Shown here: positions 7,684 through 64,000 of the stretch, piece after piece
Layout: every line of letters begins with the position of its first letter
Numbering within the stretch: position 1 is the first letter of the stretch
Sequence record: OK040170.1
Reading direction: 5' to 3' (one strand)
Length of the DNA stretch: 64,000 bases
Translations under genes and position numbers: made by a program
Notes under the pieces: generated by a model
Told to the model about the DNA's origin: nothing
Seen by the model: only the letters and a program-made list of their open reading frames with translations
Database searches by the model: none

Positions 7684-7747
7684 CGATAATGCCGCTTGGA
7701 AACAGGCGGCTAATCCTATGTAATAAACATACCTCAAGGAATTTGCC

Positions 7748-8410: not shown

Positions 8411-8422
8411 TAACGTCATATC

Positions 8423-8454
8423 CCCTCCTACAGACTTCGCGGTCTGTAGGAGGG
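8423..8454. terminator. Bidirectional hairpin terminator
   Basis: CCCTCCTACAGAC-TTCGCG-GTCTGTAGGAGGG, 13-bp stem between convergent genes. Confidence 0.85.
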
Positions 8455-8456
8455 AT

Positions 8457-8972: not shown

Positions 8973-10717
8973 TAAGCGATACCTTTAGCTGCTTTGAATC
9001 GTTGCAGTAATTGCATAGCCGTCGGAGCGTTACAAACATTGACCATGATATCAACCGAGTTAACTTTACCAGAGACTAAGTTAAGACCAGCACGACGTTG
9101 TTCTTCCATACTGACACCACGGATACGACACATTGCCCACTTGGTAGTTTCCTGAGACAAGTTCATCCAAACACCAGTAGATGGATAAGAAGACTTAACG
9201 TCGATATCCAGAACCCAACGAATGATCTTAGTGACCGAGTTAGGCATGTCTTCCAGTAGTTTGTTACCCATGTCAGGGTGAACCATGTGAGCTGATAGCG
9301 TAGAGATCCAACCGTCCAACGGAACGAGATGTTTATCCATCTCTTTTTCCATCTTATCGGAAACACCGCTCAAGATATAACCACGATCCAGTAAGTCGAA
9401 GTAGAAGTCATCTGCTAACTTACGGCCTTGAGAACCATAAGAGTGCAAATCACTGTAACCACATTGAGCCGGGAAGGTGGAACGTAAGTCGAGTGTTACT
9501 TCGTCCAACAATTGTGCACCGATGTTATCGAACATGTTGTACACGCAATAAAAGATCTTGTTGTGACGCTGCATGTGTTTGTGCCAGTCCAGGCCTGTCG
9601 CGCGTAGATCGCCATCGCCTTTTAACTTACCAAACCCAAAGGTCTTCTCCAAGATTTTACCCAAGGCATAAGAGGACTCTTTGTTAAGGTGTTTACGTAC
9701 AGCACGACGAACAGACATCTGGTCGACCCAGAAGAAGTTACTAGGGCAGTGAACTTTGTGCCAACGGTCACACGGGTCTTTTGACTCAGCAACACCGTTT
9801 GCATCAAATACCTTAGCCGCACCTTCAATCAATTTGAAGTAACGGAAGTCCTTAGGAACTTTAGGATCGCAGAAGATCTCTTCTGGAGTAAAACCACGAC
9901 GCTCAATTGCCTGAATCATTTTACCGGTATCGTACGGTAAGTTCCAGATGGACAGCATGTCAGGCTTAAGAACGTTGTGCAATTTATCGAAGATCGCTTG
10001 AACTGCTTCGAACTCATCGTCGACAATCTCGACGTGGATATTAAAGTCGTGAACAATGCCACGTTTAGAGAAGAAGTCAAATCCTTCTTTACGATTATCG
10101 ATTTCATGCAGAATAGGTTTTACTTCACGCTCGTAACACGCCTTAACCTCTTCGACGAAGTTAGGGTTTGTTCCGGCGTAGTGTTTGGTAACGAATTGAT
10201 AAACTTCATTACCGCATGACACAGAGATCATGTTGATCTTGTTAGTACCGTAAGTCACATCGAATTCGATATCGAGGTGAGCAACACGATACTCTGACTT
10301 TAAGTCAGGATACTTGTTCATGTAAGCGTGCTTAAGAAGAACCGTAGAGGTTACATCCGTACCATAAAGGTAAGGGTTACGGTTTAACATCTTAAGGCCG
10401 CCACGCATTTTCAATTTACGTTGAATGTCACCGACCATTTCAGCCTGAGTACATTCATAACGACGAACGTTATCCAGTTTCTCCCAGACACGTTTGTCTT
10501 TGTGACGACGTTGAGATTCCAGCGTAATGAAATAAGGACGCTGGTAGTTACGGATGAAGCGAAGGTTAGGTAACTTACGTCCATCCTTCAAGTGAACTAC
10601 TTCTTTAATGACTACTAAGTCATCGGAATAACTATCTTGCTTTGGTGCGTAAGACGCGTGCTTGAACTCAAAACCAAGGATATCATCTTTGGTGAAAGCG
10701 GGTTTTACTTGAGACAT
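8972..10717 (-). CDS. Split family-B DNA polymerase, exonuclease + motif A subunit (phiKZ gp82-like)
   Basis: ExoI AHLDIEFD, ExoII WNLPYD, ExoIII YNMFD, polymerase motif A DIDVKSSYPS; no motif B/C visible. Confidence 0.9.
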   Translation of the reverse strand: MSQVKPAFTKDDILGFEFKHASYAPKQDSYSDDLVVIKEVVHLKDGRKLPNLRFIRNYQRPYFITLESQRRHKDKRVWEKLDNVRRYECTQAEMVGDIQRKLKMRGGLKMLNRNPYLYGTDVTSTVLLKHAYMNKYPDLKSEYRVAHLDIEFDVTYGTNKINMISVSCGNEVYQFVTKHYAGTNPNFVEEVKACYEREVKPILHEIDNRKEGFDFFSKRGIVHDFNIHVEIVDDEFEAVQAIFDKLHNVLKPDMLSIWNLPYDTGKMIQAIERRGFTPEEIFCDPKVPKDFRYFKLIEGAAKVFDANGVAESKDPCDRWHKVHCPSNFFWVDQMSVRRAVRKHLNKESSYALGKILEKTFGFGKLKGDGDLRATGLDWHKHMQRHNKIFYCVYNMFDNIGAQLLDEVTLDLRSTFPAQCGYSDLHSYGSQGRKLADDFYFDLLDRGYILSGVSDKMEKEMDKHLVPLDGWISTLSAHMVHPDMGNKLLEDMPNSVTKIIRWVLDIDVKSSYPSTGVWMNLSQETTKWAMCRIRGVSMEEQRRAGLNLVSGKVNSVDIMVNVCNAPTAMQLLQRFKAAKGIA

Positions 10718-21124: not shown

Positions 21125-21664
21125 ATGAAGCTGCAATCTTTCCAATATACGCCGATGGGCTTTCGTAGCCCATTATACGGCGAGCAAAAAACTGAGCCTG
21201 TTCCAGACCAACTGATCATGGAGTCTTGGCAACAGATGCTCACGGATCGGGGTGAAGCTACGAACGTTTGGGCTTTTCGCCGTAAAGTCATTAACCGCGC
21301 ATTAGACCGTCTGCGTTATTTCCCGGACTGGTTGGCTGCTCAGGATAACAACACCAAGTTGTCCAAGCAGATGCGTGCGTTTCTCGAAGATACCGTAACT
21401 TACATCAACACGGGCAAACGCCCGATGTCTCTTACGGTTCGGATAGCCTGCTTGGCTACTGAGCGATCGATGGATAACATACCCACGTTTATCCCGTCGC
21501 GCCACACGCCGTCACTGCGTAAAATGCTGACCGTAAAGGCAGAGGATTACATGTGGCACTGGTTGAAGCACGATGGTGGCTTTAACGATATGGTATGTAC
21601 GCTTAACGTACTCTTCGGCGATATCGACGCCGAGGCTTATAGTACACGAAATCTTAGTATCTGA
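21125..21664 (+). CDS. Virion structural protein (phiKZ gp91-like)
   Basis: 179 aa, starts 1 nt after the upstream stop; synteny. Confidence 0.6.
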   Translation: MKLQSFQYTPMGFRSPLYGEQKTEPVPDQLIMESWQQMLTDRGEATNVWAFRRKVINRALDRLRYFPDWLAAQDNNTKLSKQMRAFLEDTVTYINTGKRPMSLTVRIACLATERSMDNIPTFIPSRHTPSLRKMLTVKAEDYMWHWLKHDGGFNDMVCTLNVLFGDIDAEAYSTRNLSI

Positions 21665-21675
21665 GGAGTTAATCG

Positions 21676-23949
21676 ATGAAGTTTACAAAAAGTATTCTGG
21701 CTAAGCGCGCTTCCGCCCCGGCCGTAGAGTCTGAAGTAATTGATCAGGCTAAAATCGATCAGTTGGCTGAAAAGAACGCTGACATCGATGAAGTCGCTAC
21801 CGGCGGCGAAGGTATCCAAACTGCAGAGCAGAAACCAGATACTACCAAAGACATCACTATGTCTGAAGTAGACCAGGTCGTCGCTGGCGAATCGGATCCT
21901 AAAAACGTAGTTGGCGAACAGTCCGACGAGAAAGCTCCAGTTGTCAAAGACGCTGGCGCAGATCTGCCGGGTGCTGTAGGTAAAGGTGACGAAGTTGCTG
22001 ATAATAAAGGCAACACCGAAGTTCCGGATACCGAGAACGAAGACGAAACCGGCACCGCCCCAACTGAAACCAAACCAGACCCAGAAGCAGACAGCAACGA
22101 AGCTGTTGCCACTGGCGAAGAAACTGCTCCGTCTAAAGAAGACGCGGCCGCTGCTGTTGCAGCTGACCTGGAAGCAGATCCGGTAGATTCCCCGGTAACT
22201 GAAGAAGAAGGCACCGAAGCCTCTGCTGACGATACTGCCGAAGCCGCCGAAGAAGAAGCTAACCTGGACAACGCCGAAGCCGGTGCAGATACTGAAAGCG
22301 ATCCGGCCAACAGCGCTGAAGGCGAAGCTACCGAAGCCGAAGACCAACCAGGCGAAGAAGGCGCAGCTGAAGCTGCCGCTGAAGTTGCAGACGCTCCTGT
22401 AGAAGTGGCCGCTGTAGAAGTTGACCCAACCGAAGCAGGTGATACCACCGCAGCTGACGAAGTCGACGCTATCGCAGTTGGCGACGACGTAGTTGTTCCG
22501 GTTGAAGTTAACGAACCAGGTGAACCTGTTGTTGCCGAAGTCCAGTTCGAAGAGCCTGTTGGCGAAACCGAAATCGTTGTTGCTACTGGCGCCGCGACTG
22601 ATGGTACTGCTGATACCACGGCTGCTATCGTAGCTGAACCTGAAGCCGCACCGGTTGCTGTAGTAGAAGGCCCGGAAGCTACCCCTGACTTCGTTGCTGT
22701 TGCTGACGCCACCGATGGCGTTGTTCCAGCGGCTACCGAAGTAGACGAAGCGTTCGAATCTGCCGACGTTATCGAAACCGATATCGTTGAGCAAGAGCCT
22801 ACCTACGAAATCCTGAGCGAAGCCGTACAGACCTACCCAGAAGTTGTAGCTGTACTGGACAACGCACTGGCTAACGGCGGGATCTCTGTAGAAGCTGCTG
22901 CCCTGCTGAACATCTTCACTCAACGTGACGGTATCCCGGCTGGCATGAACGTCGCTACTGAGTCCTACGGCGGTTACGCTCGTTCTCAGACCCGCATCGC
23001 GCTGGAGAGCATCAAAGAGTCTCTGCGTCAATGGTGGGCTGACCTGGTTAAGTGGGCTAAAGAGCAACGCGATCGTCTGGCTGCGTGGCTGAAGTCTCTG
23101 TTTGATGCAAGCGCTGCTATGCGTAAAGAAGCAGAAGCAATCATCAAAGATGCAGAAGGCCTGACCACCGACGCTACTGGCGACATCGAAGTTAAAGATC
23201 CTTCCGCTCTGGTTAAGGACGGCGCGATCTCTACCGATATCGCTCGTGACGTAACTGAGCTGGCTCAACTGATCGGACGCGTATACGTTCCACTGGGCAA
23301 CGCCTGCATGGAAGGTTGTGGCAAAGCTGCTACCGTAATCGCTGATCTGAAAGGCGACGAAGAGAAAGGCGCCGTTGCAACTGAAATCGCTCGTGCATTC
23401 GAATCGGCTGACGCTGCGTTCCGTTCTAAACTGAACGAACCAGGTGCGACTGACGGCTTCCGTCAATCCAAAGTTCAGATCGGTGAACGTGTACTGCGCG
23501 GTAAAGTTGCTGACCATAACTCCGACGTAACTCTGTCTGACTTCGCCACCGGCGACGAGTGCCTGGCATTCGTACCAGTAACCGAAGAAACTCCGGCTGA
23601 CCTGACTGTCAAAGCTCTGAAACTGGGCGATACGGTTGATACTGCGAAAGCGGTACTGGCTCTGCTGGACGCTATCGAAGAAACCAAGAAGATGGAAGCA
23701 CCGTGCAAAACTGCAGCTGATAAAGTTGACGCTGCCGGCGAACATCTGGTTAAACTGGCCGAAGAAGACAGCACCAACAGCGAGCTGGTAAGCGAACTGC
23801 GTTCTGTCGTGATGTCTCTGCAAAAAGAGATGTCTACTCCGTTCTCTCGCTCCATGAAGTACTTCGCGGCTGTTGCTCGCGCTGCACTGAGTGCCGCTCG
23901 TCAGTCTCTGCCTAAAGCAGGTGCTGCTGAACAAAGCGAAGAAGCGTAA
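21676..23949 (+). CDS. Inner-head paralog 1 with a very long acidic propeptide
   Basis: About 430 aa of A/E/D/V/T-rich N-terminus, then VATES...IALESIKESLRQWW and the family core. Confidence 0.8.
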   Translation: MKFTKSILAKRASAPAVESEVIDQAKIDQLAEKNADIDEVATGGEGIQTAEQKPDTTKDITMSEVDQVVAGESDPKNVVGEQSDEKAPVVKDAGADLPGAVGKGDEVADNKGNTEVPDTENEDETGTAPTETKPDPEADSNEAVATGEETAPSKEDAAAAVAADLEADPVDSPVTEEEGTEASADDTAEAAEEEANLDNAEAGADTESDPANSAEGEATEAEDQPGEEGAAEAAAEVADAPVEVAAVEVDPTEAGDTTAADEVDAIAVGDDVVVPVEVNEPGEPVVAEVQFEEPVGETEIVVATGAATDGTADTTAAIVAEPEAAPVAVVEGPEATPDFVAVADATDGVVPAATEVDEAFESADVIETDIVEQEPTYEILSEAVQTYPEVVAVLDNALANGGISVEAAALLNIFTQRDGIPAGMNVATESYGGYARSQTRIALESIKESLRQWWADLVKWAKEQRDRLAAWLKSLFDASAAMRKEAEAIIKDAEGLTTDATGDIEVKDPSALVKDGAISTDIARDVTELAQLIGRVYVPLGNACMEGCGKAATVIADLKGDEEKGAVATEIARAFESADAAFRSKLNEPGATDGFRQSKVQIGERVLRGKVADHNSDVTLSDFATGDECLAFVPVTEETPADLTVKALKLGDTVDTAKAVLALLDAIEETKKMEAPCKTAADKVDAAGEHLVKLAEEDSTNSELVSELRSVVMSLQKEMSTPFSRSMKYFAAVARAALSAARQSLPKAGAAEQSEEA

Positions 23950-23978
23950 TAGTACCTCGACCATCACGTAGTAAAGAT

Positions 23979-24004
23979 CAGGGAGGGAGGTTTCTCCCTC
24001 CCTG
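23979..24004 (+). terminator. Intrinsic terminator
   Basis: CAGGGAGGGAG-GTTT-CTCCCTCCCTG followed by GTTTTC. Confidence 0.8.
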
Positions 24005-39807: not shown

Positions 39808-39877
39808 AAAAAGTGCATATACTGTGCTGTTAATCAATTCAGTTCCTAAATAACGTTATTTAAAGGAAAGAACCACA

Positions 39878-42166
39878 ATGGCAAGACCATCGAAAAGCGC
39901 ACTGCGCGGCAACCTGACCAAAAATCTGGTTGAGAAAATCCACAATGCGGTAATGCGCAACGTAAACAGCCTGGGCGAAGGCTCTGCCGCTGGCGTGATG
40001 TCCGTATCTCTGGAAAGCTACAACGACCTGGGTGTTAACGCTGCTGACGTTGACAGCACCCTGGATAACCTGACCCAGGATCTGGCCGAAGCGCAAAGCG
40101 ATGCGGTTGGTGCAGTAAACGCAATCGAGCAAGGTCAGTCTGACGGCGCCATCGTTCATGGCGGCGAGTTCATCGAAGAGAACGGTAACAAAGTAGCTGT
40201 TGAAGCTGCCGCTGTTCTGGCGATGTCCTTCAAAAACCCAGGCGCTTACTACAAGGACGGTTATTCTAACCCGGCCTTCGAAAGCGGCGTTATCGTCCAC
40301 AACATGGTTTCCTCCGGTGCCAACGGCGCCATCGCGACTCTGCCGGAAAGCAGCCGTCCGTCGTTCGAATCCTTCGACGAAAAAGAAACCGAAAAATGGC
40401 GTGAACACAGCTACGCTATCAACATGATGGCCGCTAAACAGCACCCATTCGCTGAACTGTTCTACCGCACTCAGATCATCACTCCTGACCAAGCTGGCTT
40501 CGTAATGTCGATCCGCCGTAACATGGTCTGGGAAACCTACCAGGGTACTGGTCTGAAAGGCGACGCCGTTAAATTCCAAAAACGTAACATCCTGCAAGGT
40601 CTGCTGGACTACACCGTTCTGGAAAGCAACAGCACCGAACTGATCCCGTGCATCCACACCGGCGAGAACGATGACCAGTTCATCGACCCGACCCTGGTTG
40701 CACCGCGCAAAGTTGTTCAGTCCAACGAAGAGTTCGAAACCAACTACCTGAAATTCGGTGTTGGCTTCAACCTGCCAATGCTGGCACAGACTCCTTCTCG
40801 TCTGCAGAAAGGTTCTCCAACCTTCTCCGACTCTCTGGACAGCCGTATCGCGCTGAAAGATCTGCTGGTAACCGTTTCCAAAGGCGGCACCAAAGAAAAC
40901 GTGAACTTCTTCGTGAACCGCGACCAGTACGCCGCGTACACCGCAACTCGCGAATACAACTTCCGTCAAATGCAGCTGAAATTCCTGTCGACCGTTTCTG
41001 TTAACGCAGAAACCAAAACCGTTGAAGGCGCGGAATCCGCTAACCTGAAAGGTCTGATCGACGCTGGCTACAGCATGGAACTGGCTGTTGGTATCGACGG
41101 CGAAGTAAACGTTGAAACCGGCTCCGGCGAAACCTACGCACGTCCTCTGAAAATCGCTAAGATCTTCGACAAAGACGGCGTTGAAATCGCACTGTCCGAC
41201 GCGCGCGTTGCCGCTCTGATCGCTGGCCTGACTTTCGAAGCTGCGGGTTACACCCTGGAAGCTCGTCTGACCAACATCAACCAACTGGAACTGGGCCTGG
41301 CAATCGACTCCGACGTGATGAAACACGGCTTCATGATCCCAACTCTGCCGCCGCTGGTTATCATCAAGCCGGCTCTGCAAGACGAAGAGAAAGTGTATCC
41401 GCGCATCGAAGCGCTGACCACTGCTTACCGTGTGCAGATGCGTAACAACGCAGTAACCACCCTGCTGAACCGCCGCGATACTCTGAAAGCCTACCTGGGC
41501 GTTGGCGTACCGCACCCGATCGAATCTAACCAAGGCCTGGAAGGTGTCGGCCAATACTACGTGCGCCCGTACTACATGGAAGCCGAAGTAGATATCCTGA
41601 AAGATCTGAACAACCTGACCTCGGCTGCTAAGCAGACTGACATTCAGGGTCTGTTGGTTAGCAAGATCAACGAAATGGTTTACACCGCTGACCAGCTGAC
41701 TGGTTACACCGCTGCTCTGGAAGCTGCCTTCCCAGGCCGTACTCCTAAGCCGCACGTAGCTATCGGTACCGACATGCGTCTGCCGCAGTACCTGCAGATT
41801 CCTGGCGACGACCGTACCGTTGGTATTGGTTACGACTACACCATCGCTCGTATCTCCGACCTGCGCATGAAAGATCAGATCATCATGACCTTCGTGCTGC
41901 CGAACGTTGACGAGCCGCACCCGCTGCAGCACGGCGTACTGGGCCTGATTCCGGAATACCTGGTTAACTTCCAGATGATCCGTAACCAGCGCATCGGTAA
42001 CGAAATCCGTCTGACTCCGCGCTACCGTTACTTCAACTTCCTGCCGATCATGATGAGCATTACCGTCAAGAACCTGGAAGAAGCAATCGCGGCGCGTACT
42101 GCTCAAGCGAACGACGTTAAAGTCACCAACGCTGCCGATTTCAAAGGCGACGCGTCTGGCGGTTGA
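39878..42166 (+). CDS. Major capsid protein (phiKZ gp120-like)
   Basis: 762 aa, strongest codon bias in the window, SFESFDEK maturation site, QHPFAELFYRTQIITPD; position next to dnaB. Confidence 0.92.
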   Translation: MARPSKSALRGNLTKNLVEKIHNAVMRNVNSLGEGSAAGVMSVSLESYNDLGVNAADVDSTLDNLTQDLAEAQSDAVGAVNAIEQGQSDGAIVHGGEFIEENGNKVAVEAAAVLAMSFKNPGAYYKDGYSNPAFESGVIVHNMVSSGANGAIATLPESSRPSFESFDEKETEKWREHSYAINMMAAKQHPFAELFYRTQIITPDQAGFVMSIRRNMVWETYQGTGLKGDAVKFQKRNILQGLLDYTVLESNSTELIPCIHTGENDDQFIDPTLVAPRKVVQSNEEFETNYLKFGVGFNLPMLAQTPSRLQKGSPTFSDSLDSRIALKDLLVTVSKGGTKENVNFFVNRDQYAAYTATREYNFRQMQLKFLSTVSVNAETKTVEGAESANLKGLIDAGYSMELAVGIDGEVNVETGSGETYARPLKIAKIFDKDGVEIALSDARVAALIAGLTFEAAGYTLEARLTNINQLELGLAIDSDVMKHGFMIPTLPPLVIIKPALQDEEKVYPRIEALTTAYRVQMRNNAVTTLLNRRDTLKAYLGVGVPHPIESNQGLEGVGQYYVRPYYMEAEVDILKDLNNLTSAAKQTDIQGLLVSKINEMVYTADQLTGYTAALEAAFPGRTPKPHVAIGTDMRLPQYLQIPGDDRTVGIGYDYTIARISDLRMKDQIIMTFVLPNVDEPHPLQHGVLGLIPEYLVNFQMIRNQRIGNEIRLTPRYRYFNFLPIMMSITVKNLEEAIAARTAQANDVKVTNAADFKGDASGG

Positions 42167-42217
42167 ACGCTCGCAGAGGCCTTTGAAGAAACCTTACCGG
42201 GTTTCGATCCGGCCTAG
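42164..42217 (+). other. Putative UGA readthrough extension of the MCP (X-TLAEAFEETLPGFDPA)
   Basis: TGA-A stop, 16 in-frame sense codons to TAG 42215-42217, all upstream of the terminator; the peptide matches motifs in ORFs 50639 and 54251. Confidence 0.7.
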
Positions 42218-47786: not shown

Positions 47787-50585
47787 TCAGGGTGGCGCCA
47801 GGTTGTCGTCTTCAGCATCTTGGAACGGATCTTCGTTTGCACGGTCACCGCCAAATTCATCTTCACGACTACCGAAGTCATTACCGCCCAGGTCACCTTC
47901 TCCGAAGTCTTCGAACTCGTCTGAACCCGTATCGAATTCTGAGTCACTGGAGCTATTGTCGCTACCCCAATCACTACCGCCTCCGAAACCGCCTTGGTTA
48001 GCGTTTTCAATTGCTTGACTCAAGTCAGGGTTAGTTTCCTTCGTAACTTCCAAGCGGTTCTCACGGAGCTGACGAATAACTGCAGCGGTGTCGCCCAGGT
48101 TATGTACCAGGTTAGCCATGTGCGCATTCAGCTCTTTAGAGAAGTCAATCGCAGGGTTATCTTCGCTACCTACACGAGTCAGTTCACTCAGACCAAAGTC
48201 CATCCCCGTCTTAGCCAGGTACTCACGTTTGAAGTAAGCGGCCACGTTAGCTTTGAGGTGATTGATCTTATCTTGGTCTTCGTCACCCAGAGATGGCCCG
48301 ATGAGTTCTGGAGAGATGTAGTTCTCAACCATGTCATCAATCCATTGAGAGACTTTGTCGTATTCTTCTTTCTGGTTCTCGATCCGGTTAGATTCAGGAC
48401 GAGGAAGTTCCAGATAAAGGACGCGGAAGAACTCTTCAATGGCATCGGTATATTGCAGTGAGTATGGGTTATCCATATCGTTGCAACGGTACTCTTCTGG
48501 GAGCTGGTCGTTGTGTTCACGGAAGATCTCTTGGATGCGCCCAACCAACGTACCGTCAGACAAAGTATAAGACTTAACAAACTTCTTACCGTGTTTGCAA
48601 GTGTCATCCTGAATCATCATGATACGTTTTGCGTAAAGCTGGTTAGTTGTCCAGCGAGAGATAGCAAAGTCTGCCTGGGTAGTCATGTCCACCATTTCAG
48701 GTGTTACGAACAGACCCATGTATTGCTGACGTTGCAATTCACGAGAGAACTCTGGATCGATTTGTTGACGTTGAGATTGGAACTCAGAAACATCGACTGT
48801 CGTGTTAGGCATACGCGGGTTACCTTGGACTTCAATAACCACACCCATGGAACGAATAACACGGAACATCTCAGCAGCAGACGTTACGTCTGTCGGAGTA
48901 CCGCCAGCCTGTTGACGCATGAACTCATCGATCATGACGTGATACGCTTTGTCCGGATCAGGGTCACGAGGGTCAATGTTCATGGTAACTTTAGTACGGC
49001 CAACTGCGTTTTTAACCCCGGCCATGAAGTTAGCAAAGGTTGTCATTGCACGCAGAGCGGATACTTGCTTGATGTCATCCATCAGGGATTTACCCATGCC
49101 GTTCTTGTCGTAGTCGTATGCAAAGTACGCAACGTTCTCAACAGGTACGAATACCATGTGAGTACGCTGGTTAGCAAACTTACGGAACAGGAACAGACGC
49201 ATGATATCTTCGTTCCAACCCAACTTAACGTTACGGCCAAGCAAACCGTTTTTAATACGGTTAAGTACGTTCTCTTCCAGAACCTGGTCGAAGATACGTA
49301 CACGCTCAGCGGCGTTAGTTTTATCAGCATCGTAACAAAGACCGGAACCCAACATCTTAGTCTGTTGAATAAGTGAAGAGGTCTGGTTCATCTGACTGTC
49401 GCCGTTAAGACCATTGTTACCGTTCTTAACAGCACGAGCGATCTCGTCGGTTACATCCAACGGGTGACCAAGTTCATCCAGGAGAATAATGTAGCCTAAG
49501 TGGTTGCGAGGCTCACCTTTAGGGAAGCACGGAATACAAGATTCACTTGGTACTTTAATAACCAGCGGGTGACCAATAGAAGAACGAGAAGCTTCAGCCG
49601 CCGTTGTCATTACCTTAACACGTTCCATCGCACTACCGTTGTCGCGATAGAGGCTGTTGGCAAGGGTGCGGATCTCCTTGATATGACCGTTACCGCCGCT
49701 AAAGGACTCGTTGGAAATACGAGTAGTCGAACGGAAAGAACGGTTCATTCGCTTCTGGTTGATCCGGTCACGAACCTTACCTAAACCGAGAACTGCAATG
49801 TTATCGGTAATGGTACACGCGTCGTTAATGCGCGTAGGTGTTTCACGGTCACCGGCTGGGTTCCAGAAGAAGTTTTCCATGCTAGGAGTGCTGACTTCGC
49901 GTCGCTTCTCTTTCTTGGCTTCTTCTTCAGTAAGACCTGGGTCGCCCAAGATACCTTTACCTGTATGTTTCAACGTACCGTCTTTAAACTGTGATGCAAT
50001 GTGGGCCGCGTACATTTCGTCGGTCATTGCAGCAGATTCGTTAGAGACGCCGTTATAGGTACGGTCGTTGATGATATCGTCGATTACTGCTTCAGGAACG
50101 ATAACGCCAATCCAAGCACCGTAGTCGAACAATGCTTCACCGATGATCTCCGGCAGTTTATCGCGGAGAGGGTAATAACCACCATCACCGAAATGTTCGC
50201 GGATAACTTCCGTGATTTCATTCAGTATAGTAGGACGAATTTCTGAATCTTCTGTTTTAAAGACCAGCTCGCCGTCGAACATGTCTACAGGAGAAAGGGT
50301 GGTGGAAATGATCATTTGTTTGATCAGTTTCAAATCGCTACTCAGCTGCAGGATAGTTTCTGCATCCAAGTTCTTCTGAGCACGGTTTCCGACGATGTGG
50401 TCGAAAATAGTCTCATTATGTACCTTAACACCTTCACCCTGGCTATGATCACCGGTTAAATGGTCACGTACCATCTTCGTCATGATAGACGTGGCAGCAG
50501 GCGTATTTTCTAACCATTTCGTGGGTTTACTCCGAACACTCGTATCGGGACCACTACTGGTAAGAGTAGGTTTCTTCATTATCAT
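47787..50585 (-). CDS. Portal protein (phiKZ gp129-like)
   Basis: 932 aa; SIGHPLVIKVPSESCIP...YIILLDELGHP; SNES/SMEN processing-like sites; acidic Gly-rich tail. Confidence 0.85.
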   Translation of the reverse strand: MIMKKPTLTSSGPDTSVRSKPTKWLENTPAATSIMTKMVRDHLTGDHSQGEGVKVHNETIFDHIVGNRAQKNLDAETILQLSSDLKLIKQMIISTTLSPVDMFDGELVFKTEDSEIRPTILNEITEVIREHFGDGGYYPLRDKLPEIIGEALFDYGAWIGVIVPEAVIDDIINDRTYNGVSNESAAMTDEMYAAHIASQFKDGTLKHTGKGILGDPGLTEEEAKKEKRREVSTPSMENFFWNPAGDRETPTRINDACTITDNIAVLGLGKVRDRINQKRMNRSFRSTTRISNESFSGGNGHIKEIRTLANSLYRDNGSAMERVKVMTTAAEASRSSIGHPLVIKVPSESCIPCFPKGEPRNHLGYIILLDELGHPLDVTDEIARAVKNGNNGLNGDSQMNQTSSLIQQTKMLGSGLCYDADKTNAAERVRIFDQVLEENVLNRIKNGLLGRNVKLGWNEDIMRLFLFRKFANQRTHMVFVPVENVAYFAYDYDKNGMGKSLMDDIKQVSALRAMTTFANFMAGVKNAVGRTKVTMNIDPRDPDPDKAYHVMIDEFMRQQAGGTPTDVTSAAEMFRVIRSMGVVIEVQGNPRMPNTTVDVSEFQSQRQQIDPEFSRELQRQQYMGLFVTPEMVDMTTQADFAISRWTTNQLYAKRIMMIQDDTCKHGKKFVKSYTLSDGTLVGRIQEIFREHNDQLPEEYRCNDMDNPYSLQYTDAIEEFFRVLYLELPRPESNRIENQKEEYDKVSQWIDDMVENYISPELIGPSLGDEDQDKINHLKANVAAYFKREYLAKTGMDFGLSELTRVGSEDNPAIDFSKELNAHMANLVHNLGDTAAVIRQLRENRLEVTKETNPDLSQAIENANQGGFGGGSDWGSDNSSSDSEFDTGSDEFEDFGEGDLGGNDFGSREDEFGGDRANEDPFQDAEDDNLAPP

Positions 50586-50638: not shown

Positions 50639-53209
50639 ATGGCGGATACCACGCAACGATTGTACGTTGATGGCGCAATGAGTCTAGCGCAGACGATGAC
50701 AATCAAGTTCAACGCCGGTGCGGTAGCGATCAACAATTATTTAACCGAAATAGGTTACACCGTTGACCCTAATGTTCCATCCACTTGGCGTTACTACATG
50801 AACCTTGCTGGCAAGTATCATGTCAGTAATCAGCAAATGAAAGTGACCTCCTTGGACACCTTGGAGGAGATTGACTTCACATATGATAACCTCTTAATCC
50901 ACCGAGCTACTAAAGCAGCCTATAAGTACGGTTCCCGTTACTACAATGAACTTGTAGAACAATACCCAGAACAGGAATTGCTAATTAGGGGCGTTTTATG
51001 GCCAGTGGATATTGACAAGGCGATTGATGCCAAGGACTTCACTATCCTTTATTACGATAGTGACGAGGTTGATCCCAATGAAACGTATTTGATCCAGGAT
51101 CTCCAAGAATGGATTTACCGGTTTACGTATCGTTGGTATCTAGTATTTGCTGCAGCTGTACAAAAATATTACCCGGCGACGTTTTTTGGGACTTTATTTA
51201 TTCACCTGGTTGGCGAGATAATCAGTATTCGTGAGAACTATTGCCGTACTCAATACGTGCATAGCTATCACCTTTGGGCGTACCTTGGTTCACACGGTCG
51301 TCTGAATGCGTACAAGGATTACGTCAACATCACCCAGGCGTTGTGGTTGTACCGTAATATTCGCTACATCGATAACCACGCCGGTAAAACGACTACCTTC
51401 GATGATCTTATCCTTAATATCCTGACAGCCCGTAACATCCCGCTGACAGCTTATTTCCTGCGCCATAACTCGAAGGATGTTCCTGAGTCTATTCTCCCTG
51501 AAGGGGAAGTAGCTAAGGATCCTAAGAACTACCTGGCAGAGTCCGTTCAAGGTATCGAACGAATCTCAATTGGGGAAGCTCTGGATAACGAAGTTAACTC
51601 GGCTAAGGATAACGATAAGTATCTGGCCAAGCAGAAAATCGATGTTCCTATTCGAGTCGCTAACGCCATTACCGGTGAGCTACCTACTAAGGTACTCGAG
51701 TCGGTCATGATTGACCGTTCAGATTCTGTACCGCACAAGTTTGTTGATACGTTAATGGGTGAGTGGATCTATCTGGCGACTGAAGGTCGTTACGTAGCAA
51801 ACATCACCATCCCTAACCCGGCTACGCAAGAAGCCATGTCGATGACGGTAAGGGAAGCATTGATCCTTTGGGTCTACTGTGCGATGCGTCAGTTTGAAAT
51901 GGTACTGGAAGACGTCCCTGATCTGACAGCCTGGTTTGTGCAACGTCTAGCGGCTCCTGAGTTCTCTGAACTGCGTGGTGTGTGCGAACCTAAGTATGTT
52001 AGTGAAGCGGCTATCTTGATGGCTCTGACTGAGCATACTCCGGTGTCTACTATTATCTCGACTGAAGCGTTCTACAACACTGTAGCTCAGATTCAAAGTA
52101 ACATTAACGCCCATCGCGTCATGTACACGCGTCAGCAAGACTTCCGTGCTCGTGGTCAGATGGAAGTGATGACCAATCGCTTTTACATCAACAAGAAATG
52201 TCAGTTGTCAGCCACACCGATTAAATACGCAGACTGGTTCCACACCAAGAACTGGGATATGGAGTTGAGTTCCCCTGAAGCGTATTCCGATTTCTGTTTC
52301 CAGCTAATAGAAGTTGCAACGGGTGCTAACTTGCGCTCGACAATATCGGTGTCCGATGTACACAGCGCCATGATAGCGATCATGACTCAGCTGTCTAGTT
52401 ACTCTGTACAGTACGTCCACAAAACTAACGCATCTCCAAACATCATTGTTGATAACTTGGCGATTCGTTTCGGTGGCATTGAGTCTCGTCCTAGCGCTGA
52501 CTTTAAAATTGACCAACGCGTTGAAATCATTAACCAGTACCAACGTGGTAAACTCTCTCCTGACAAGTCTGCATTTGAAGGGATTGAGATTGGCTCGAAG
52601 TATATTCATGCGCCACACTTCTACCGTGTGTTCTCGTCCGTGGACTTCCTGCCAGATACCCATGTTGCTACTCGTCACCAGATTGAGATCGCTGAGGTTA
52701 GGTTCAAAGGTTCGCTTGCTAAAGATATCGGTCTTGAGATCAGTAAACATGATCTTGACGGCCTGTGGCTTTATCTGGCAACCGCTCGTCCAATTAACGA
52801 AGTCATCACTAACCCAAGGTTACCTGGGTTGTGGGTACGCGTACCTCGTGAAGATGAGTACTTACCTAACGAGATTACCAAAACCGATATTGAAGGACTG
52901 TGGACGAATGTTATCCCTGGCCCAGAGAAATTGGTCATTGGCAATAAACCACTCCCAGGTCTGTGGTTAGAGCCTATCGTTCCTTACGAGTTGGAAGACT
53001 TTAAAGAACGTCTCGAAGGTTTCGATCCACCTGAACCATTTAAACCAACTACGTTGGCTGATGGTTTCGATGAGAATCTGGGTGGCTTCGTTGGGTACAT
53101 TGAACCTGAGTTTGACCTCTTCAATATAGAGGAAGAACTTCCTGGCTTCGATTCGCCTGATAGCGAACCAAAAGCACCTTACGATTTCTCTGCTTTGTTT
53201 GGCGAGTAA
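50639..53209 (+). CDS. Baseplate-associated virion protein (phiKZ gp128-like) with C-terminal LxGLW and LxGF repeats
   Basis: TWRYYMNLAGKYH, VTSLDTLEEIDF, YPEQELLIRGVLWPVDI; divergent from the portal gene. Confidence 0.7.
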   Translation: MADTTQRLYVDGAMSLAQTMTIKFNAGAVAINNYLTEIGYTVDPNVPSTWRYYMNLAGKYHVSNQQMKVTSLDTLEEIDFTYDNLLIHRATKAAYKYGSRYYNELVEQYPEQELLIRGVLWPVDIDKAIDAKDFTILYYDSDEVDPNETYLIQDLQEWIYRFTYRWYLVFAAAVQKYYPATFFGTLFIHLVGEIISIRENYCRTQYVHSYHLWAYLGSHGRLNAYKDYVNITQALWLYRNIRYIDNHAGKTTTFDDLILNILTARNIPLTAYFLRHNSKDVPESILPEGEVAKDPKNYLAESVQGIERISIGEALDNEVNSAKDNDKYLAKQKIDVPIRVANAITGELPTKVLESVMIDRSDSVPHKFVDTLMGEWIYLATEGRYVANITIPNPATQEAMSMTVREALILWVYCAMRQFEMVLEDVPDLTAWFVQRLAAPEFSELRGVCEPKYVSEAAILMALTEHTPVSTIISTEAFYNTVAQIQSNINAHRVMYTRQQDFRARGQMEVMTNRFYINKKCQLSATPIKYADWFHTKNWDMELSSPEAYSDFCFQLIEVATGANLRSTISVSDVHSAMIAIMTQLSSYSVQYVHKTNASPNIIVDNLAIRFGGIESRPSADFKIDQRVEIINQYQRGKLSPDKSAFEGIEIGSKYIHAPHFYRVFSSVDFLPDTHVATRHQIEIAEVRFKGSLAKDIGLEISKHDLDGLWLYLATARPINEVITNPRLPGLWVRVPREDEYLPNEITKTDIEGLWTNVIPGPEKLVIGNKPLPGLWLEPIVPYELEDFKERLEGFDPPEPFKPTTLADGFDENLGGFVGYIEPEFDLFNIEEELPGFDSPDSEPKAPYDFSALFGE

Positions 53210-53275
53210 TCTTAACGACCAAGGATGGTTGTTATGTTAATATTTCAGCTAATGTAACGCCTATCGGAGTCAACA

Positions 53276-54115
53276 ATGGCAAACGCGAATTACTACAATA
53301 AGCCCACTAACCGATTAGTCTTTGACTTGATCAAAGAAGCTAACCCGGAAGCGGACTTCTCAGAAGATCAAGTAAGGTTAACGAACTTTACCCAGAACAC
53401 CAATGGCGACCCGTTACGTAACACCGCAGGTATTCTGAAAGCAATCCCTGGCATGGGCCGTGAAGGTCAAGAGAACCTGACCTGGAACCGTCCTGCACTG
53501 AACGAGATCTTTAAAGAGATCAGCGTTTACTGTTCTCCTAACGGTAAGTTCAAGAAATCTGACTTACTGAAAGAAATCAACAGTAACTATAACTTCCAGC
53601 TGGACGCCGGTGATATTTACGACGGTGTACTGAACCTGTCAACTCTACCGACCAAAACGGTTATCGTGGTACGTCCTACCTGTCCTGCTTTTACTGGTCA
53701 GTTAGAGATTACCATTGGTGATCCTAAGATCGCTCTGGAGACGGTTATTCGTAACCCTGACCTGGATGGCCTGGCTTACCCTACCAACCAGTCTGAGAAG
53801 ATCCAAGGTCCCCTGTACATGTATGCCAATGACTACACGTACGATGCCACTGGTCTTCAGCAGTTTGGTTACGGCGATCCTATCCAAGGCGAACTCCTGG
53901 AAAGCCTCAACCGTAAATCGCCAGACACCTGGGTACTGAAACCTACCCCTGCTCCGTGGAACGCTAACGGTGCTGACGTATGGTACAATGGCCCGACTGC
54001 TCAGGCTCCGGTATACGTGAACACTTCGTACCAGCGTTGCTTGGTTATCCACCTGGATAAAGAGTATTGCTCTAACGTTGCCGGTCACTTGATCCTGCAT
54101 TACAACATGCCATAA
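53276..54115 (+). CDS. Virion structural protein (adaptor-like domain + DLDGLAYP motif + C-terminal domain)
   Basis: 279 aa; N-terminal domain and C-terminal WNA...YNG region look paralogous to ORF 55842. Confidence 0.7.
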   Translation: MANANYYNKPTNRLVFDLIKEANPEADFSEDQVRLTNFTQNTNGDPLRNTAGILKAIPGMGREGQENLTWNRPALNEIFKEISVYCSPNGKFKKSDLLKEINSNYNFQLDAGDIYDGVLNLSTLPTKTVIVVRPTCPAFTGQLEITIGDPKIALETVIRNPDLDGLAYPTNQSEKIQGPLYMYANDYTYDATGLQQFGYGDPIQGELLESLNRKSPDTWVLKPTPAPWNANGADVWYNGPTAQAPVYVNTSYQRCLVIHLDKEYCSNVAGHLILHYNMP

Positions 54116-54120
54116 TAGAA

Positions 54121-54143
54121 GCCTGCTGCAAAATGCAGCAGGC
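54121..54143 (+). terminator. Hairpin terminator
   Basis: GCCTGCTGCA-AAA-TGCAGCAGGC. Confidence 0.7.
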
Positions 54144-54250
54144 CTTATGCTTTATTGTTCGCTTAGTATGGAAGGCATGTTCTTCTTTAGAACGTTTTGC
54201 CACCATCCATTTCCCTGGATGTTTTAAAAACCTGTTTAAGGATTTATCCG

Positions 54251-54784
54251 ATGGCACGTATCGCGTTTAACCCGGCAAACTCTGCCGATGATGAATTCAC
54301 TCGTCTCCTGGTAAATGGTACTACCATCCCAGAGCTGAAAGCAGTTAAGCTGACCACTGATTACACTGTAACCACCCCTGCCGCCGCTAACACCGGTGAG
54401 AAAGATGGTAACACCGTTATCGGCCTGACCCCTGCGGCTGGCAGTAAACTGCTGAAAGGCGACGCACGTGAGTTCTACTACGATCGTCTGAGCATCGCTT
54501 CTGAACTGACCCGTAAAGCAGTTAACCTGAAGTCTGCTGACGCACTGACCCCGGCTAACCGTGACGCGTTCGCCCTGACCTGCGTAAAAGCAGTTTGGGA
54601 CAAATTCGTTGCTGCTGACGTCGTGTTCAAAGAAGACAAAACTGAAGGCGAAGTTGTAGCGTACGTCTACACTATCAAAGCCGACAACAAAGTCTTCAAC
54701 GGCGAATTCACTATCACTTCCGGCGACCAGACTCTCCAGTCCTTCAGCGAGAACCTGGGCGGCTTTGACGCACCGGCTGCGTAA
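54251..54784 (+). CDS. Probably abundant virion protein ending in TLQSFSENLGGFDAPAA
   Basis: Start moved to ATG 54251 (TAAGGA RBS); MCP-like codon bias; own terminator. Confidence 0.8.
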   Translation: MARIAFNPANSADDEFTRLLVNGTTIPELKAVKLTTDYTVTTPAAANTGEKDGNTVIGLTPAAGSKLLKGDAREFYYDRLSIASELTRKAVNLKSADALTPANRDAFALTCVKAVWDKFVAADVVFKEDKTEGEVVAYVYTIKADNKVFNGEFTITSGDQTLQSFSENLGGFDAPAA

Positions 54785-54794
54785 TAGTTGACCG

Positions 54795-54828
54795 AAGAGT
54801 CGGAGGGATGACCTCCGACTCTTATTTT
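54795..54828 (+). terminator. Intrinsic terminator
   Basis: AAGAGTCGGAGG-GATGA-CCTCCGACTCTT followed by ATTTT. Confidence 0.85.
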
Positions 54829-54886
54829 ATGTCACCTTCCCCTCATTTAGCTTTCCACTAGAGAGCTATCGCTTTAAGGATTTAAA

Positions 54887-55825
54887 ATGAGCGCAAGTAC
54901 TAATACCAACTTGATTACGCGCACTGTTCTTAGTGGGATGCTGCAAACGTGTTTGCTGGCAGGTATCCCGTTAACAGTTCTGGATTATACGACGCTCAAT
55001 CAGCGTCTGGGTATTAACGAAGATGCTAAGTTGGCATCTAACGAAATGCCTACCTTCGGTTACTGGTGCATCGGTGACAAAGGTCACTGGGTTGTCCCTA
55101 CTTCCGATGGCGAAGTTATTATCGAACCAGCTGAACATACCGCCGGTGACTTCGCCCCGTTCAACATGATTCCGTTTGTCATGCGTGAAGAGTCTAACGA
55201 CCTGTCTGTAGAAGAGCGTAAGAAGTACGGCCTTCGTAAATCAGAGAACCGCAACGGGATCAACTATTTCTCTTACTACGCCAAGGCCATCGACCTGACT
55301 GGTAAGAAGCCGCGTATGGAACGTACTACCGTGAAAGACGGCGTTGCGACCACTACCGAATACACGCCGAACAACTCCAACCTGTATCCTGAGCGTAAAA
55401 CTCTGACGACCAACGAAGCCGTCACTACCAACTCCGATACTCTGACCGTTTCGTTGACTACTGATGTACTGTTCGACGACAACGACGTTAAAGAGCTGAA
55501 CAACGTATCTCGCATCCTGTACGGTAACGAGAAGCGTGCAATCATCTCTGAGATCGCATTGGTATCTGCATTCAAACGTGTTGTACAGGCTCCCGGTCCT
55601 GGCGGCGGTGCTATCTCTATCACCGAAGCGATCTGTGCCCAGGTACTGACCTTCTTGTCTACTTATCGTCAGATGTCCTTCGACAACCGCGGTTTCGTTA
55701 TTACTCTGGAAATGGGTGCTAACGAACCGATGATGACATCCGACGCGGTAGGTACCAGCTCAGGTCGAGACGCCGTTCAAAACGCACGTCAGTTGTTCTC
55801 TGCGAATATCGCACCACGCGCTTAA
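54887..55825 (+). CDS. Baseplate wedge-like virion protein (phiKZ gp130-like)
   Basis: RTVLSGMLQT, YTTLNQRLGI, GYWCIGDKGH, PFNMIPFVMR; synteny. Confidence 0.7.
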   Translation: MSASTNTNLITRTVLSGMLQTCLLAGIPLTVLDYTTLNQRLGINEDAKLASNEMPTFGYWCIGDKGHWVVPTSDGEVIIEPAEHTAGDFAPFNMIPFVMREESNDLSVEERKKYGLRKSENRNGINYFSYYAKAIDLTGKKPRMERTTVKDGVATTTEYTPNNSNLYPERKTLTTNEAVTTNSDTLTVSLTTDVLFDDNDVKELNNVSRILYGNEKRAIISEIALVSAFKRVVQAPGPGGGAISITEAICAQVLTFLSTYRQMSFDNRGFVITLEMGANEPMMTSDAVGTSSGRDAVQNARQLFSANIAPRA

Positions 55826-55841
55826 AACGAAGGAGCGGTAA

Positions 55842-56990
55842 ATGAGTACTATCTTTGGCCACGATACCATCAAGGCTGAAGTTATCGATTTAATCAATAA
55901 GAAGAATGCTCAGTTTGGTGCAGACTTTACCGAGGACAACCTCGAAGTCACGTGGCTCAGCTACGATGCATTAGACCGTCGTCAAACGATGATGACGAAA
56001 GATCTTTCTGGTCGATACTTTGGTTTACGTGATATCCGCTTCTTCAAACGCGATTACGATCTCCTCTTTAAAGGGATCGACGTAAAGATCCAGGTAGGTT
56101 CAGGCTACAACAACCGCGCGGTGCTCAAAGAGCTTTCTCGTGCATACGGGTTACCTCCATTCGAAGATTACGACTTTGCTCCAGGTCTACTGGACATGTC
56201 TATCGAAGTAGGTGACCACGAGCAATTGATCGAATGGCCATTTGCTGACTCCAGCTGGGGTTGGACAGGGACTTGTCGATTCAAGCTCCGTAACATGAAG
56301 ACCTCGCTGGAAACGCTTATTCCAGACGGTACATTGGATCGATTCCATCCAGAAGAGCTGAAAGGCGTCTTCTACGAATTGGTCAACGGTACGTTGAGTG
56401 GATTGGATTACCCAGAATACTTCGACCTTGGTAAGATCATTACGATCACTGATCTCGAAGGTTTGGAATACCCAGACGATATCGACTTGGGTGTTATTAT
56501 CCATACCACAGATCTGGAAGGTCTGGAATATCCGCCGATGACTGACATCAGCAAGTTCCAAACTAGCGATCTCCAGGGCTTGGAATACCCTCCTGCTTAC
56601 GACTTGACTAAACTCAATGTCTTTGCATTGGCCGGTCTGGATTATCCAAGTGGTACTGGCGCAGGTCAAACTTCTGCGTACAGCACGACCTACCCGCTGG
56701 ACTTCTCTGATTACCAACGTGCAATCCGTACTTATCGTTTAGGCGATACGATCACGGACGTTAACTTGGTGAACGTCATTGTTAGCATGATCCAGTCTAA
56801 CTGGACTAAGCTGCAGGGTGAGACTAACAAGTCTAACCTCTTTAACTCCTTCTTGAATGCGACCATCCAGAGCATTGAACAGAAACGTTCGATCCATGGT
56901 TGGACTATTTCGGTCGGCGTTAAGTTGAGTTCTCAACGCGTACTTCGCGGCAATGCCGTGCTGCGTTACGACATCCAATCTGAATATTAA
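55842..56990 (+). CDS. Virion structural protein with five tandem LxGLxYP repeats
   Basis: TLSGLDYP, DLEGLEYP (x2), DLQGLEYP, ALAGLDYP at about 19-20 aa spacing. Confidence 0.75.
   Translation: MSTIFGHDTIKAEVIDLINKKNAQFGADFTEDNLEVTWLSYDALDRRQTMMTKDLSGRYFGLRDIRFFKRDYDLLFKGIDVKIQVGSGYNNRAVLKELSRAYGLPPFEDYDFAPGLLDMSIEVGDHEQLIEWPFADSSWGWTGTCRFKLRNMKTSLETLIPDGTLDRFHPEELKGVFYELVNGTLSGLDYPEYFDLGKIITITDLEGLEYPDDIDLGVIIHTTDLEGLEYPPMTDISKFQTSDLQGLEYPPAYDLTKLNVFALAGLDYPSGTGAGQTSAYSTTYPLDFSDYQRAIRTYRLGDTITDVNLVNVIVSMIQSNWTKLQGETNKSNLFNSFLNATIQSIEQKRSIHGWTISVGVKLSSQRVLRGNAVLRYDIQSEY
56386..56650 (+). repeat. Five tandem peptide repeats (LxGLxYP)
   Basis: Visible at both DNA (gatctNgaaggtYtggaata) and protein level. 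Confidence 0.85.
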
Positions 56991-63045: not shown

Positions 63046-64000
63046 ATGTCTACGAACGTTGAAGTAGTTAAGTACCCGTATGACCCGACAGGTAATGCGA
63101 TTACTAACCGTATCATCAATGAACGCCGTACCGTTGGTCGTGAATACAACCGTGCATTAGCTCCATATGCCGGGCCGTACTATTCTGACTCAATGGTGGT
63201 GACTGATGCAATCACTGCCAAAGTTCTGGTTCGGGATTACGACTATAAGTTGCTTTATCCTGAGCAAGAGGCTGAGCTCCGTATCGGTAAGCCTGTATGT
63301 ACCATGGTTCAGATCCTCAACCTGGATCACACCGACGTTAACCTGACGTATCAAGTTGTCGGTGGCCCGTACAGTACTTCCGTTAACGTGATTGGTAAAC
63401 TCCTTAATGAGATTCAGCAGGACAACCGCCCAGTTCGCTGGGATGACATCCTGGGGAAACCAACTGAGTTCAACCCATCAAAACACCTGACCTCTGCAAC
63501 CGACCTTTACGGTTTGGAATACGTGGTCATGTCGTTGGAAGATATCGTCCAGGCTATCTACCAAGGTGACGTCAGCTCCCACGATGTACTTTACGATTAC
63601 ATTGAGCGAATCAAAAAGTATTTGGACGACAACCTGAATGACCTCCACAACATGGACAATGAGTTGGCTGCTCGTATTGAAGCCGTCAACGTCCGTGTCG
63701 ATTCGACTAACCTCGATCTGAAGGCATTAGGTGATCGTACCGATAAACACATCGGGGATAAAGATAACCCGCACAATACCACCAAAGCACAAGTCGGTCT
63801 GGGGGCAGTGGAGAACTACCGTCCTGCGACTCAACCTGAAGCTGAGGCAGGTACTGCTAACGAAGTGGTCATGACAGCTCTGCGCACTTGGCAGGCGATC
63901 ACTAAGTTTAACACCCTGAACATCGATCCTAAAATCAGTAGTCACATCGCTAACCGAAACAACCCACACGGTGTAACTGCCGCACAAGTTGGTTTAGGTG
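63046..64000 (+). CDS. Tail fibre paralog, 3' end truncated by the window edge (absent from the ORF track)
   Basis: ATG 63046 with GAGG RBS, open to the end; YPYDPTG, YQVVGGPY, WDDILGKPTEFNP and two NPH...AQVGLG repeats mirror ORF 60806. Confidence 0.85.
   Translation, partial: MSTNVEVVKYPYDPTGNAITNRIINERRTVGREYNRALAPYAGPYYSDSMVVTDAITAKVLVRDYDYKLLYPEQEAELRIGKPVCTMVQILNLDHTDVNLTYQVVGGPYSTSVNVIGKLLNEIQQDNRPVRWDDILGKPTEFNPSKHLTSATDLYGLEYVVMSLEDIVQAIYQGDVSSHDVLYDYIERIKKYLDDNLNDLHNMDNELAARIEAVNVRVDSTNLDLKALGDRTDKHIGDKDNPHNTTKAQVGLGAVENYRPATQPEAEAGTANEVVMTALRTWQAITKFNTLNIDPKISSHIANRNNPHGVTAAQVGLG

Follow-up and report, generated by a model that had tools for sequence, protein, structure and literature searches.

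A short peptide motif proposed to root DUF7941 fibre proteins on the baseplate wedge, and perhaps the capsid, of Serratia phage BUCT660 and related phages

Virion structures have been published for the related phages phiKZ and Goslar. In the phiKZ atlas, gp128 belongs to a wedge heterotrimer, with one copy per wedge and six wedges, and a band of five gp139 dimers runs from gp128 to gp127, with gp128 touching the first dimer (PMC13250141); the spoke of Goslar is also built from five dimers. Goslar encodes ten paralogues of the DUF7941 family, some with carbohydrate-binding or hydrolase domains, and gp23 and gp22 are estimated at about 2140 and 580 copies per virion, respectively (bioRxiv 10.64898/2026.04.21.720040). 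In the AlphaFold 3 models of the same preprint, each DUF7941 linker is placed on the N-domain of the following protomer, and gp23 is predicted to oligomerise as well; furthermore, filaments were obtained with purified Goslar gp22, and unexplained density in the phiKZ baseplate could be fitted with a gp126-gp127 dimer. In the literature that we searched, phage DUF7941 was discussed only in this preprint, and the name was mentioned once in one further paper. Here we analysed a window of 64,000 nucleotides (the whole stretch of DNA under study) from sequence record OK040170.1, which derives from Serratia phage BUCT660 (Moabitevirus, phiKZ-like, genome 272.7 kb, 100% identity), and we describe a short motif that recurs in the tail of its baseplate wedge protein, in its DUF7941 proteins and in a piece of sequence behind its capsid gene.

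The window closely resembles these systems. Its DUF7941 proteins agree with Goslar gp22 and gp23 and with phiKZ gp126 and gp127 in family, in the order of N-domain, linker and C-domain, and in gene neighbourhood (Goslar gp31-gp35), and the Goslar model shares with ours both the proposed mechanism, a linker placed on the next N-domain, and the presence of long paralogues with host-recognition domains. An initial annotation of the window had proposed a plug-and-socket system in which peptide motifs bind one shared adaptor domain and which could build branched fibres on baseplate, sheath and head. This idea is largely known, as it matches the published Goslar model in its essentials; the new elements, compared with the preprint, are the wedge-tail arrays across many chimalliviruses, the conserved five-fold linker and the capsid post-stop plug. 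The preprint, in contrast, names no sequence motif, wedge tail, multi-copy linker or capsid gene, and locates the fibres no more precisely than at the peripheral baseplate.

The DUF7941 linker motif

The motif was located in four open reading frames (ORFs), all on the plus strand and named here by their first nucleotide. ORF 50639 (50639-53209) encodes the 856-residue baseplate wedge protein, whose tail carries eight motifs at 52754-53158. Four are of the LxGLW type, starting at residues 706, 728, 751 (an Ile variant) and 772 with spacings of 22, 23 and 21 residues, and four of the GF type, starting at residues 792, 807 (an Ala variant), 814 and 834. ORF 53276 (53276-54115), a full-length, phiKZ gp127-like DUF7941 protein of 279 residues with N-domain, linker and C-domain, has a single DLDGLAYP in its linker (Leu at residue 163, nucleotides 53762-53782). 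ORF 54251 (54251-54784), a short DUF7941 protein of 177 residues analogous to Goslar gp23, consists of an N-domain and a GF-type motif, NLGGFDAP, near its C-terminus (Leu at residue 169, nucleotides 54755-54775). Finally, ORF 55842 (55842-56990) encodes a DUF7941 protein of 382 residues with five LxGLxYP motifs, at residues 185, 205, 225, 244 and 263 (nucleotides 56394-56648), between its N- and C-domains. All the motifs quoted in the initial annotation for these four ORFs were thus found where it had placed them, and their number is well above chance. When a whole-phage set of 295 proxy genes (83,607 residues) was compared with shuffled sequences, L.GL.YP occurred 6 times against 0.1 expected, all six copies lying in ORFs 53276 and 55842, and L.GLW occurred 4 times against 0.5 expected, with three of the four in the wedge tail. 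The 167-residue wedge tail alone contains six strict L.G[LF] motifs (eight by the relaxed pattern), compared with the 0.16 strict motifs that a proteome-wide rate of 0.00098 per residue would give, an excess with a Poisson probability of about 2e-8 as computed by hand from that rate.

The three ORFs downstream of the wedge gene had been suspected, by eye, to share an N-terminal domain, and profile comparisons indeed established that they are related members of DUF7941 (PF25613). ORF 53276 matched the profile with an E value of 8e-81 (residues 5-277 on profile positions 2-275) and also matched 9xqd_0 PHIKZ127 (E 0.004), and ORF 55842 matched PF25613 with E 6e-22. The match of ORF 54251 (E 2e-4) falls below the Pfam cut-off; this protein additionally matched phrog_1037 (E 1e-6) and, by hhalign, the DUF7941 N-domain (81%, E 1e-5), with its terminal NLGGFDAP aligned exactly on the LxGLxYP column of the family. 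Like Goslar gp23, it has no C-domain. The family of ORF 55842 aligned over both domains with a DUF7941 profile of 51 sequences (hhalign 98.6%, E 8e-16), the array appearing as an insertion at the linker, and a Foldseek search with the AlphaFold 2 (AF2) model of ORF 55842 returned the gp127 N-domain, 9xqd_0, as its single significant match (probability 1.0; template-modelling score 0.62, target-normalised). By homology to the virion proteins of phiKZ and Goslar, the products of all three ORFs would be expected in the virion.

We then measured linker conservation in 105 near-full-length sequences, comprising the query and 104 representatives of 50%-identity clusters. At the columns corresponding to residues 163-169 of ORF 53276, L was present in 79%, G in 62%, L, I or F in 83%, Y in 72% and P in 83% of the sequences, the second and fifth columns being free, and these columns rank among the most conserved of the family. 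In the aligned sequences, the motif thus corresponds to the conserved linker core of DUF7941. In the N-domain, an Arg (residue 72 of ORF 53276) is almost invariant. Among the short DUF7941 representatives, 9/16 carry a plug-like motif at the C-terminus, against 15% expected by chance; the C-terminus of ORF 54251 is conserved in Moabite and Totoro, and Goslar gp23 extends about 30 residues past its N-domain to end in ...ADGFVKP. The five-fold array of ORF 55842 is likewise maintained, as all five copies were kept in 19/19 orthologues with 46-100% identity, including those of Klebsiella phages, and in copies 2-4 the L-G-L-Y-P core is invariant, whereas the spacers drift. The array alone matched only DUF7941 profile positions 157-176. 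Taken together with the published docking model, these observations make it likely that the linker motif serves as the docking element of DUF7941 proteins.

A profile search of all BUCT660 ORFs detected six DUF7941 N-domains, three in the window and three in proteins of 188, 683 and 688 residues. The C-terminal parts of the 683- and 688-residue proteins matched PHROG families annotated as tail fiber protein and hydrolase, and no plug motif was found in either protein. A phiKZ gp131-like fibre protein at the end of the window (63046-64000, running off its edge) contains TDLYGLEY at residue 154, with all seven residues that are fixed in the repeats of ORF 55842; this occurrence is within the chance expectation for the proteome, a search for relatives of the protein returned the phage itself only, and the protein was rejected as a further DUF7941 member (hhalign probability 0.2%).

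Motif arrays in the tail of the wedge protein

Residues 1-613 of ORF 50639 align with solved wedge subunits at E values of 1e-110 to 1e-117, including 11lx_Bh (E 2e-117), 36za_sR and 9xqs_C PHIKZ128. It is thus a homologue of phiKZ gp128 and Goslar gp35 (9xqs, 36za, 11lx; PMC13250141) and likewise lies beside the portal gene. The descriptions of those proteins differ in that they cover helical N- and C-domains only, the tail past about residue 600 being unmodelled, and the phiKZ tail has no motif; the Goslar wedge chain as deposited ends at residue 595. In an AF2 model of ORF 50639 built with 51 homologues, residues 1-610 had a predicted local distance difference test score (pLDDT) of 85-95, and residues 615-856 a pLDDT of 30-47. 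Similarly, the AF2 model of ORF 55842, built on an alignment of its orthologues, had confident N- and C-domains flanking residues 154-274 with a pLDDT of 30-47. In these single-chain predictions, neither array folded as an internal solenoid, the alternative that the initial annotation had itself set against intermolecular binding, and we rejected the solenoid for both. The other observation named there as refuting, unrelated N-terminal domains in the three ORFs, is contradicted by the profile comparisons above.

To survey the tail, defined as the sequence beyond residue 600, we searched with the full-length wedge protein, since a tail-only query gave three close relatives only, and clustered the homologues at 90% identity. 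In the resulting 120 homologues, the density of L.G[LF] was 10.8 per 1000 residues in the tail versus 0.38 in the body; at least one tail motif was present in 80/120 and at least two in 54/120. The strict copy number ranged from 0 to 10, the top homologue having ten motifs at an exact 21-residue period (twelve by the relaxed pattern), and the modal spacing was 21-23 residues. The array of BUCT660 is conserved in Totoro and P0022; tail arrays are also present in FBKp24, Ea35-70, Goslar (three motifs) and Ea277G, and Klebsiella-type wedge tails have five motifs. These arrays thus display the traits of short linear motif arrays, namely a short conserved core, variable spacers, predicted disorder and a copy number that varies from 0 to 12.

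The likeness between the wedge tail and the DUF7941 linker extends to positions that the search pattern leaves free. In 197 distinct wedge-tail instances, we observed the same preferences as in the linker, with N>V>T>D at position -3, T at -2, D, N or P at +1 and L>F>I at +3. Furthermore, the wedge tails of distant metagenomic phages have the canonical linker form itself (DLPGLTYP, DLGGLTYP and DLDGLTYP), and the adjacent DUF7941 genes encode either an N-domain only or an N-domain with He_PIG/Laminin_G (adhesin) domains, in both cases with no plug. Plugs on the wedge tail next to plug-less DUF7941 neighbours are what one would expect of a wedge tail that serves as a rack for N-domains. GF-type motifs were concentrated at the last position of the array (28/42 versus 24/123, p 4e-8, a value that ignores the kinship of the sequences), and their median distance to the C-terminus was 11.5 residues. 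On balance, the wedge-tail and five-fold arrays are rather more likely than not to be multivalent docking sites for DUF7941 N-domains.

Multivalent scaffolds that recruit modules through a repeated recognition element are familiar from the cohesin-dockerin system of the cellulosome and from the branched tailspike adaptors of phages CBA120 and G7C, and the arrays resemble these in that one scaffold would recruit several enzymatic or receptor-binding modules. In those systems, however, both partners are folded domains, whereas here the recognition element would be a linear peptide, about 10 residues long and embedded in disordered sequence, with the socket on the recruited protein. The wedge homologue of Pseudomonas phage EL, gp104 (EL locus 6977-9298), has a four-fold tail repeat of its own, ...YGRLVFKEL..., that bears no relation to LxG[LF] and may represent another kind of tether in that lineage. 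We did not retain lineage-private repeats as a general rule, as the EL repeat is not shared by the neighbouring proteins.

Other explanations of the arrays were weighed against docking of DUF7941 N-domains. Since the pattern is very short, and bare L.G[LF] reaches 82 copies in the proteome versus 58 expected, one might ask whether the motifs are chance matches; this was ruled out by the shuffles and proteome rates, with the flavour-specific counts, clustering, periodicity, conservation down to 46% identity and about 28-fold enrichment of tail over body leaving it a negligible probability. A more substantial proposal is that the spoke protein (gp139/gp32, DUF7208) is the partner of the wedge-tail array, and perhaps of the ORF 55842 array, with the array acting as a staple or ruler along the five spoke dimers. 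The wedge does touch the first gp139 dimer, spokes have five dimers in both phiKZ and Goslar, five motifs occur in Klebsiella-type wedge tails and in ORF 55842, the cluster includes the spoke gene, and a spacing of about 21 residues could, by our own estimate, span one dimer. The copy number, however, varies from 0 to 12 against five dimers in both solved spokes, with three motifs in Goslar; phiKZ builds its spoke without wedge-tail motifs; and the motif is that of the DUF7941 linker, unfixed positions included. We therefore consider spoke binding improbable.

A similarly low, or slightly lower, probability attaches to the repeats of about 21 residues being units of an oligomeric fibrous fold, such as a beta-spiral or beta-helix shaft, with Gly and hydrophobic residues at turn and core positions. 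Such a fold would account for the regular period, the conserved Gly and the hydrophobic flanks, and AF2 single-chain models often have low confidence on the repeats of obligate-trimer fibres. Nevertheless, the motif is single-copy in most DUF7941 proteins and also occurs at extreme C-termini, the wedge protein is present in one copy per wedge heterotrimer, and the copy number is evolutionarily labile. The arrays alone, moreover, matched no fibre-repeat family of Pfam and no solved chain, and a known fibrous repeat was rejected on this basis.

The piece downstream of the capsid stop codon

The initial annotation had also named an extension of the major capsid protein (MCP) as a motif carrier. 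The MCP gene (39878-42166, plus strand, annotated as major head protein) ends in a TGA stop, read directly from the sequence, and is followed in frame by a piece of 16 codons and a TAG (42167-42217, plus strand), which ends in a GF-type plug, ...LPGFDPA, and is a candidate readthrough extension. It is this piece that carries the motif; the body of the MCP has only two generic matches, which are not significant, and was rejected as a carrier. Throughout, the post-stop piece was analysed as a separate peptide.

In a comparison with related phages, the piece proved to be conserved as a peptide. In three Moabitevirus lineages, Moabite, Totoro and BUCT660, the TGA, the length of the piece and the TAG are all kept, and 11-14/16 residues of the piece are identical among Moabitevirus phages, versus 2-3/16 for the last 16 residues of the MCP. 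The variable sites are distributed 5:2:10 over the three codon positions, six codons have synonymous changes only, and the Leu of the motif is encoded by three different codons. Homologous pieces follow a TGA in Ea277G/PhiEaH1, PCH45, SPLA10, two further viral contigs and Goslar, giving about seven lineages in all; the capsid stop is TGA in 11/11 genomes with the piece and TAA in 4/4 genomes without it (Maaswegvirus-like). In four lineages, the post-stop plug matches the C-terminus of the short DUF7941 protein of the same phage, with GFD-P(A) in BUCT660, GFT-P in Ea277G and L-x-G-F-x-x-P-A in the PCH45 type, and the Goslar piece shares the identical heptapeptide DNVADGF with gp23. The C-termini of the Goslar MCP are described in the literature as forming a barrel at the hexon centres.

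Minor capsid isoforms made by recoding are known from Qbeta, in which A1 arises by UGA readthrough of the coat gene, and from T7, in which gp10B arises by frameshifting. The resemblance lies in a capsid gene with a leaky terminal stop and in a conserved in-frame extension that would give a few subunits an extra surface function. The present case differs in that the putative extension has only 16-50 residues, is a candidate docking peptide and belongs to a 270-kb double-stranded DNA phage. Of the features associated with readthrough, a conserved leaky stop and an extension conserved at the peptide level were found, and a stimulatory RNA element or suppressor tRNA was not; neither of the latter is obligatory for basal UGA leakiness.

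The piece may instead be untranslated and owe its conservation to an RNA or DNA function, such as that of the terminator region or a hairpin, or to recent common ancestry. Indeed, an intrinsic terminator lies downstream of it in BUCT660, and a hairpin lies within it (42177-42215), with a stem of GAAACC/GGUUUC in BUCT660 and GAACCC/GGGUUC in Moabite and Totoro that looks compensatory. The phage has no suppressor tRNA, and no detection of an extended capsid isoform, by proteomics or otherwise, was reported in the searched literature; both points count against readthrough, as does the lack of an RNA fold common to the lineages. That same lack speaks against an RNA function, since the hairpin reaches significance in BUCT660 alone (z -2.2) and other lineages do not share it, and RNA structure was rejected as the cause of the conservation. 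An untranslated piece would also leave unexplained why TGA and frame are kept in about seven lineages next to a poorly conserved MCP terminus, why codons change synonymously and the motif Leu uses three of them, and why the peptide tracks the DUF7941 plug of each phage. In addition, the piece itself lacks a start codon. We accordingly consider lack of translation rather unlikely, and translation of the piece by readthrough, as judged from these comparisons, at least an even prospect and perhaps slightly better.

The proposed network and its genomic setting

We propose that docking relies on a single short, linear motif with the approximate consensus [N/V]-T-x-L-[D/N/P]-G-[L/F/I]-x-[Y/W]-P, which is presented in disordered segments and gripped as a plug by the globular N-terminal domain of DUF7941 (about 150 residues). 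The wedge C-terminal tail, with eight plugs per copy and no socket, would be one root of the network, and a minor capsid isoform with one plug, made by TGA readthrough, would probably be the second. ORFs 53276 and 54251, each with a socket and one plug, would act as extenders, ORF 55842, with a socket and five plugs, as a brancher, and the 683- and 688-residue proteins, with a socket, a fibre or hydrolase head and no plug, as leaves. Together, these parts would assemble into a flexible network of DUF7941 fibres, as proposed for Goslar, with fixed rooting points. If each motif binds one domain, copy number would correspond to valency. Overall, it is probable that the plugs on wedge, linkers and capsid piece are bound by DUF7941 N-domains, the binding being inferred from motif identity and the AlphaFold 3 models of the preprint, and its stoichiometry hypothetical.

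The shared-adaptor idea of the initial annotation therefore agrees with the published DUF7941 model, and the comparative data extend it to the wedge tail, the five-fold array and the capsid piece; its fibres on the sheath, on the other hand, found nothing to support them. The annotation had also assigned specificity to motif flavour (W, YP or FD). In line with this, GF-type plugs are terminal, and in four lineages the GF plug of the capsid post-stop piece varies together with that of the short DUF7941 protein; such a code can be offered tentatively. The most complete picture is that, in a subset of nucleus-forming jumbo phages, one peptide code hangs a modular fibre network on two roots, the wedge-tail arrays and a hexon-centre plug added by UGA readthrough, with flavour (GL-W, GL-x-YP or terminal GF) selecting the paralogue and amplification of the motif (five, up to 12 copies) setting the branching. 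In this entirety, the picture is doubtful.

Several points weigh against the network. AF2 in monomer mode can report the fibre repeats of obligate oligomers as disordered, and our AF2 models were run on single chains. The lineage counts given above are not phylogenetically independent. Tail motifs are absent from the wedge proteins of phiKZ, 201phi2-1, RSL2, Joad and Aeromonas D6 despite the presence of DUF7941 proteins; because of these five phages, the wedge anchor is not universal, and within the surveyed homologues the wedge-tail array is clade-restricted. A genome-wide scan of the post-stop frames of BUCT660, in which the initial annotation had hoped for more motif carriers, gave 9 matches versus 10.6 expected and hence no general enrichment. 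Finally, the published docking consists of an AlphaFold 3 prediction and low-resolution fitting, the preprint that reports it names no motif, and the filament-forming Goslar gp22 has only a degenerate one.

The gene order of the cluster, wedge, DUF7941, DUF7941, spoke, DUF7941, is that of Goslar gp35 to gp31. The portal gene (phiKZ gp129-like, 47787-50585, minus strand; annotated as such, phrog_3004 E 5e-181) precedes the wedge gene, and this divergent arrangement is kept in all 16 loci compared. The spoke gene (ORF 54887, 54887-55825, plus strand) encodes a DUF7208 protein of 312 residues corresponding to phiKZ gp139 and Goslar gp32 (PF23838 E 1e-104; 9xpg_A PHIKZ139 E 1e-53) and is a neighbour in the cluster, not a motif carrier. 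The N-terminus of this protein (54887-54990) contains VLSGML and LLAGIP, with ALSGLL and LLPGLS as the FBKp24 counterparts; lying inside the DUF7208 profile match, they are probably structural elements. Elsewhere in the window, an I-TevI-like homing endonuclease is annotated at 1426-2772, adjoining an RNA polymerase subunit gene. The guanine-cytosine content, about 0.47 elsewhere, peaks at 0.547 (22001-24000) and 0.543 (40001-42000), the second peak being the MCP gene. Very long antisense ORFs lie on the minus strand at 39860-42106 (748 residues), opposite the MCP gene, and at 21637-23967 (776 residues), opposite the gene at 21676-23949, and are probably a by-product of codon bias.

The virion structures of phiKZ and Goslar published in 2026 leave much of the peripheral baseplate unmodelled and the attachment of thousands of DUF7941 copies open. 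A docking motif on wedge arrays, with a candidate copy on the capsid, turns this question into hypotheses that can be checked in existing maps and proteomes, and with it, the anchors, extenders, branchers and receptor-binding leaves of any chimallivirus could be sought by a simple sequence rule. Should the capsid piece be translated, a large double-stranded DNA phage would provide a case of readthrough at a capsid-gene stop codon, and host-recognition fibres could arise from the head besides the tail. If the network is true, the fibre cloud of these phages would be anchored and branched at defined points of the virion.

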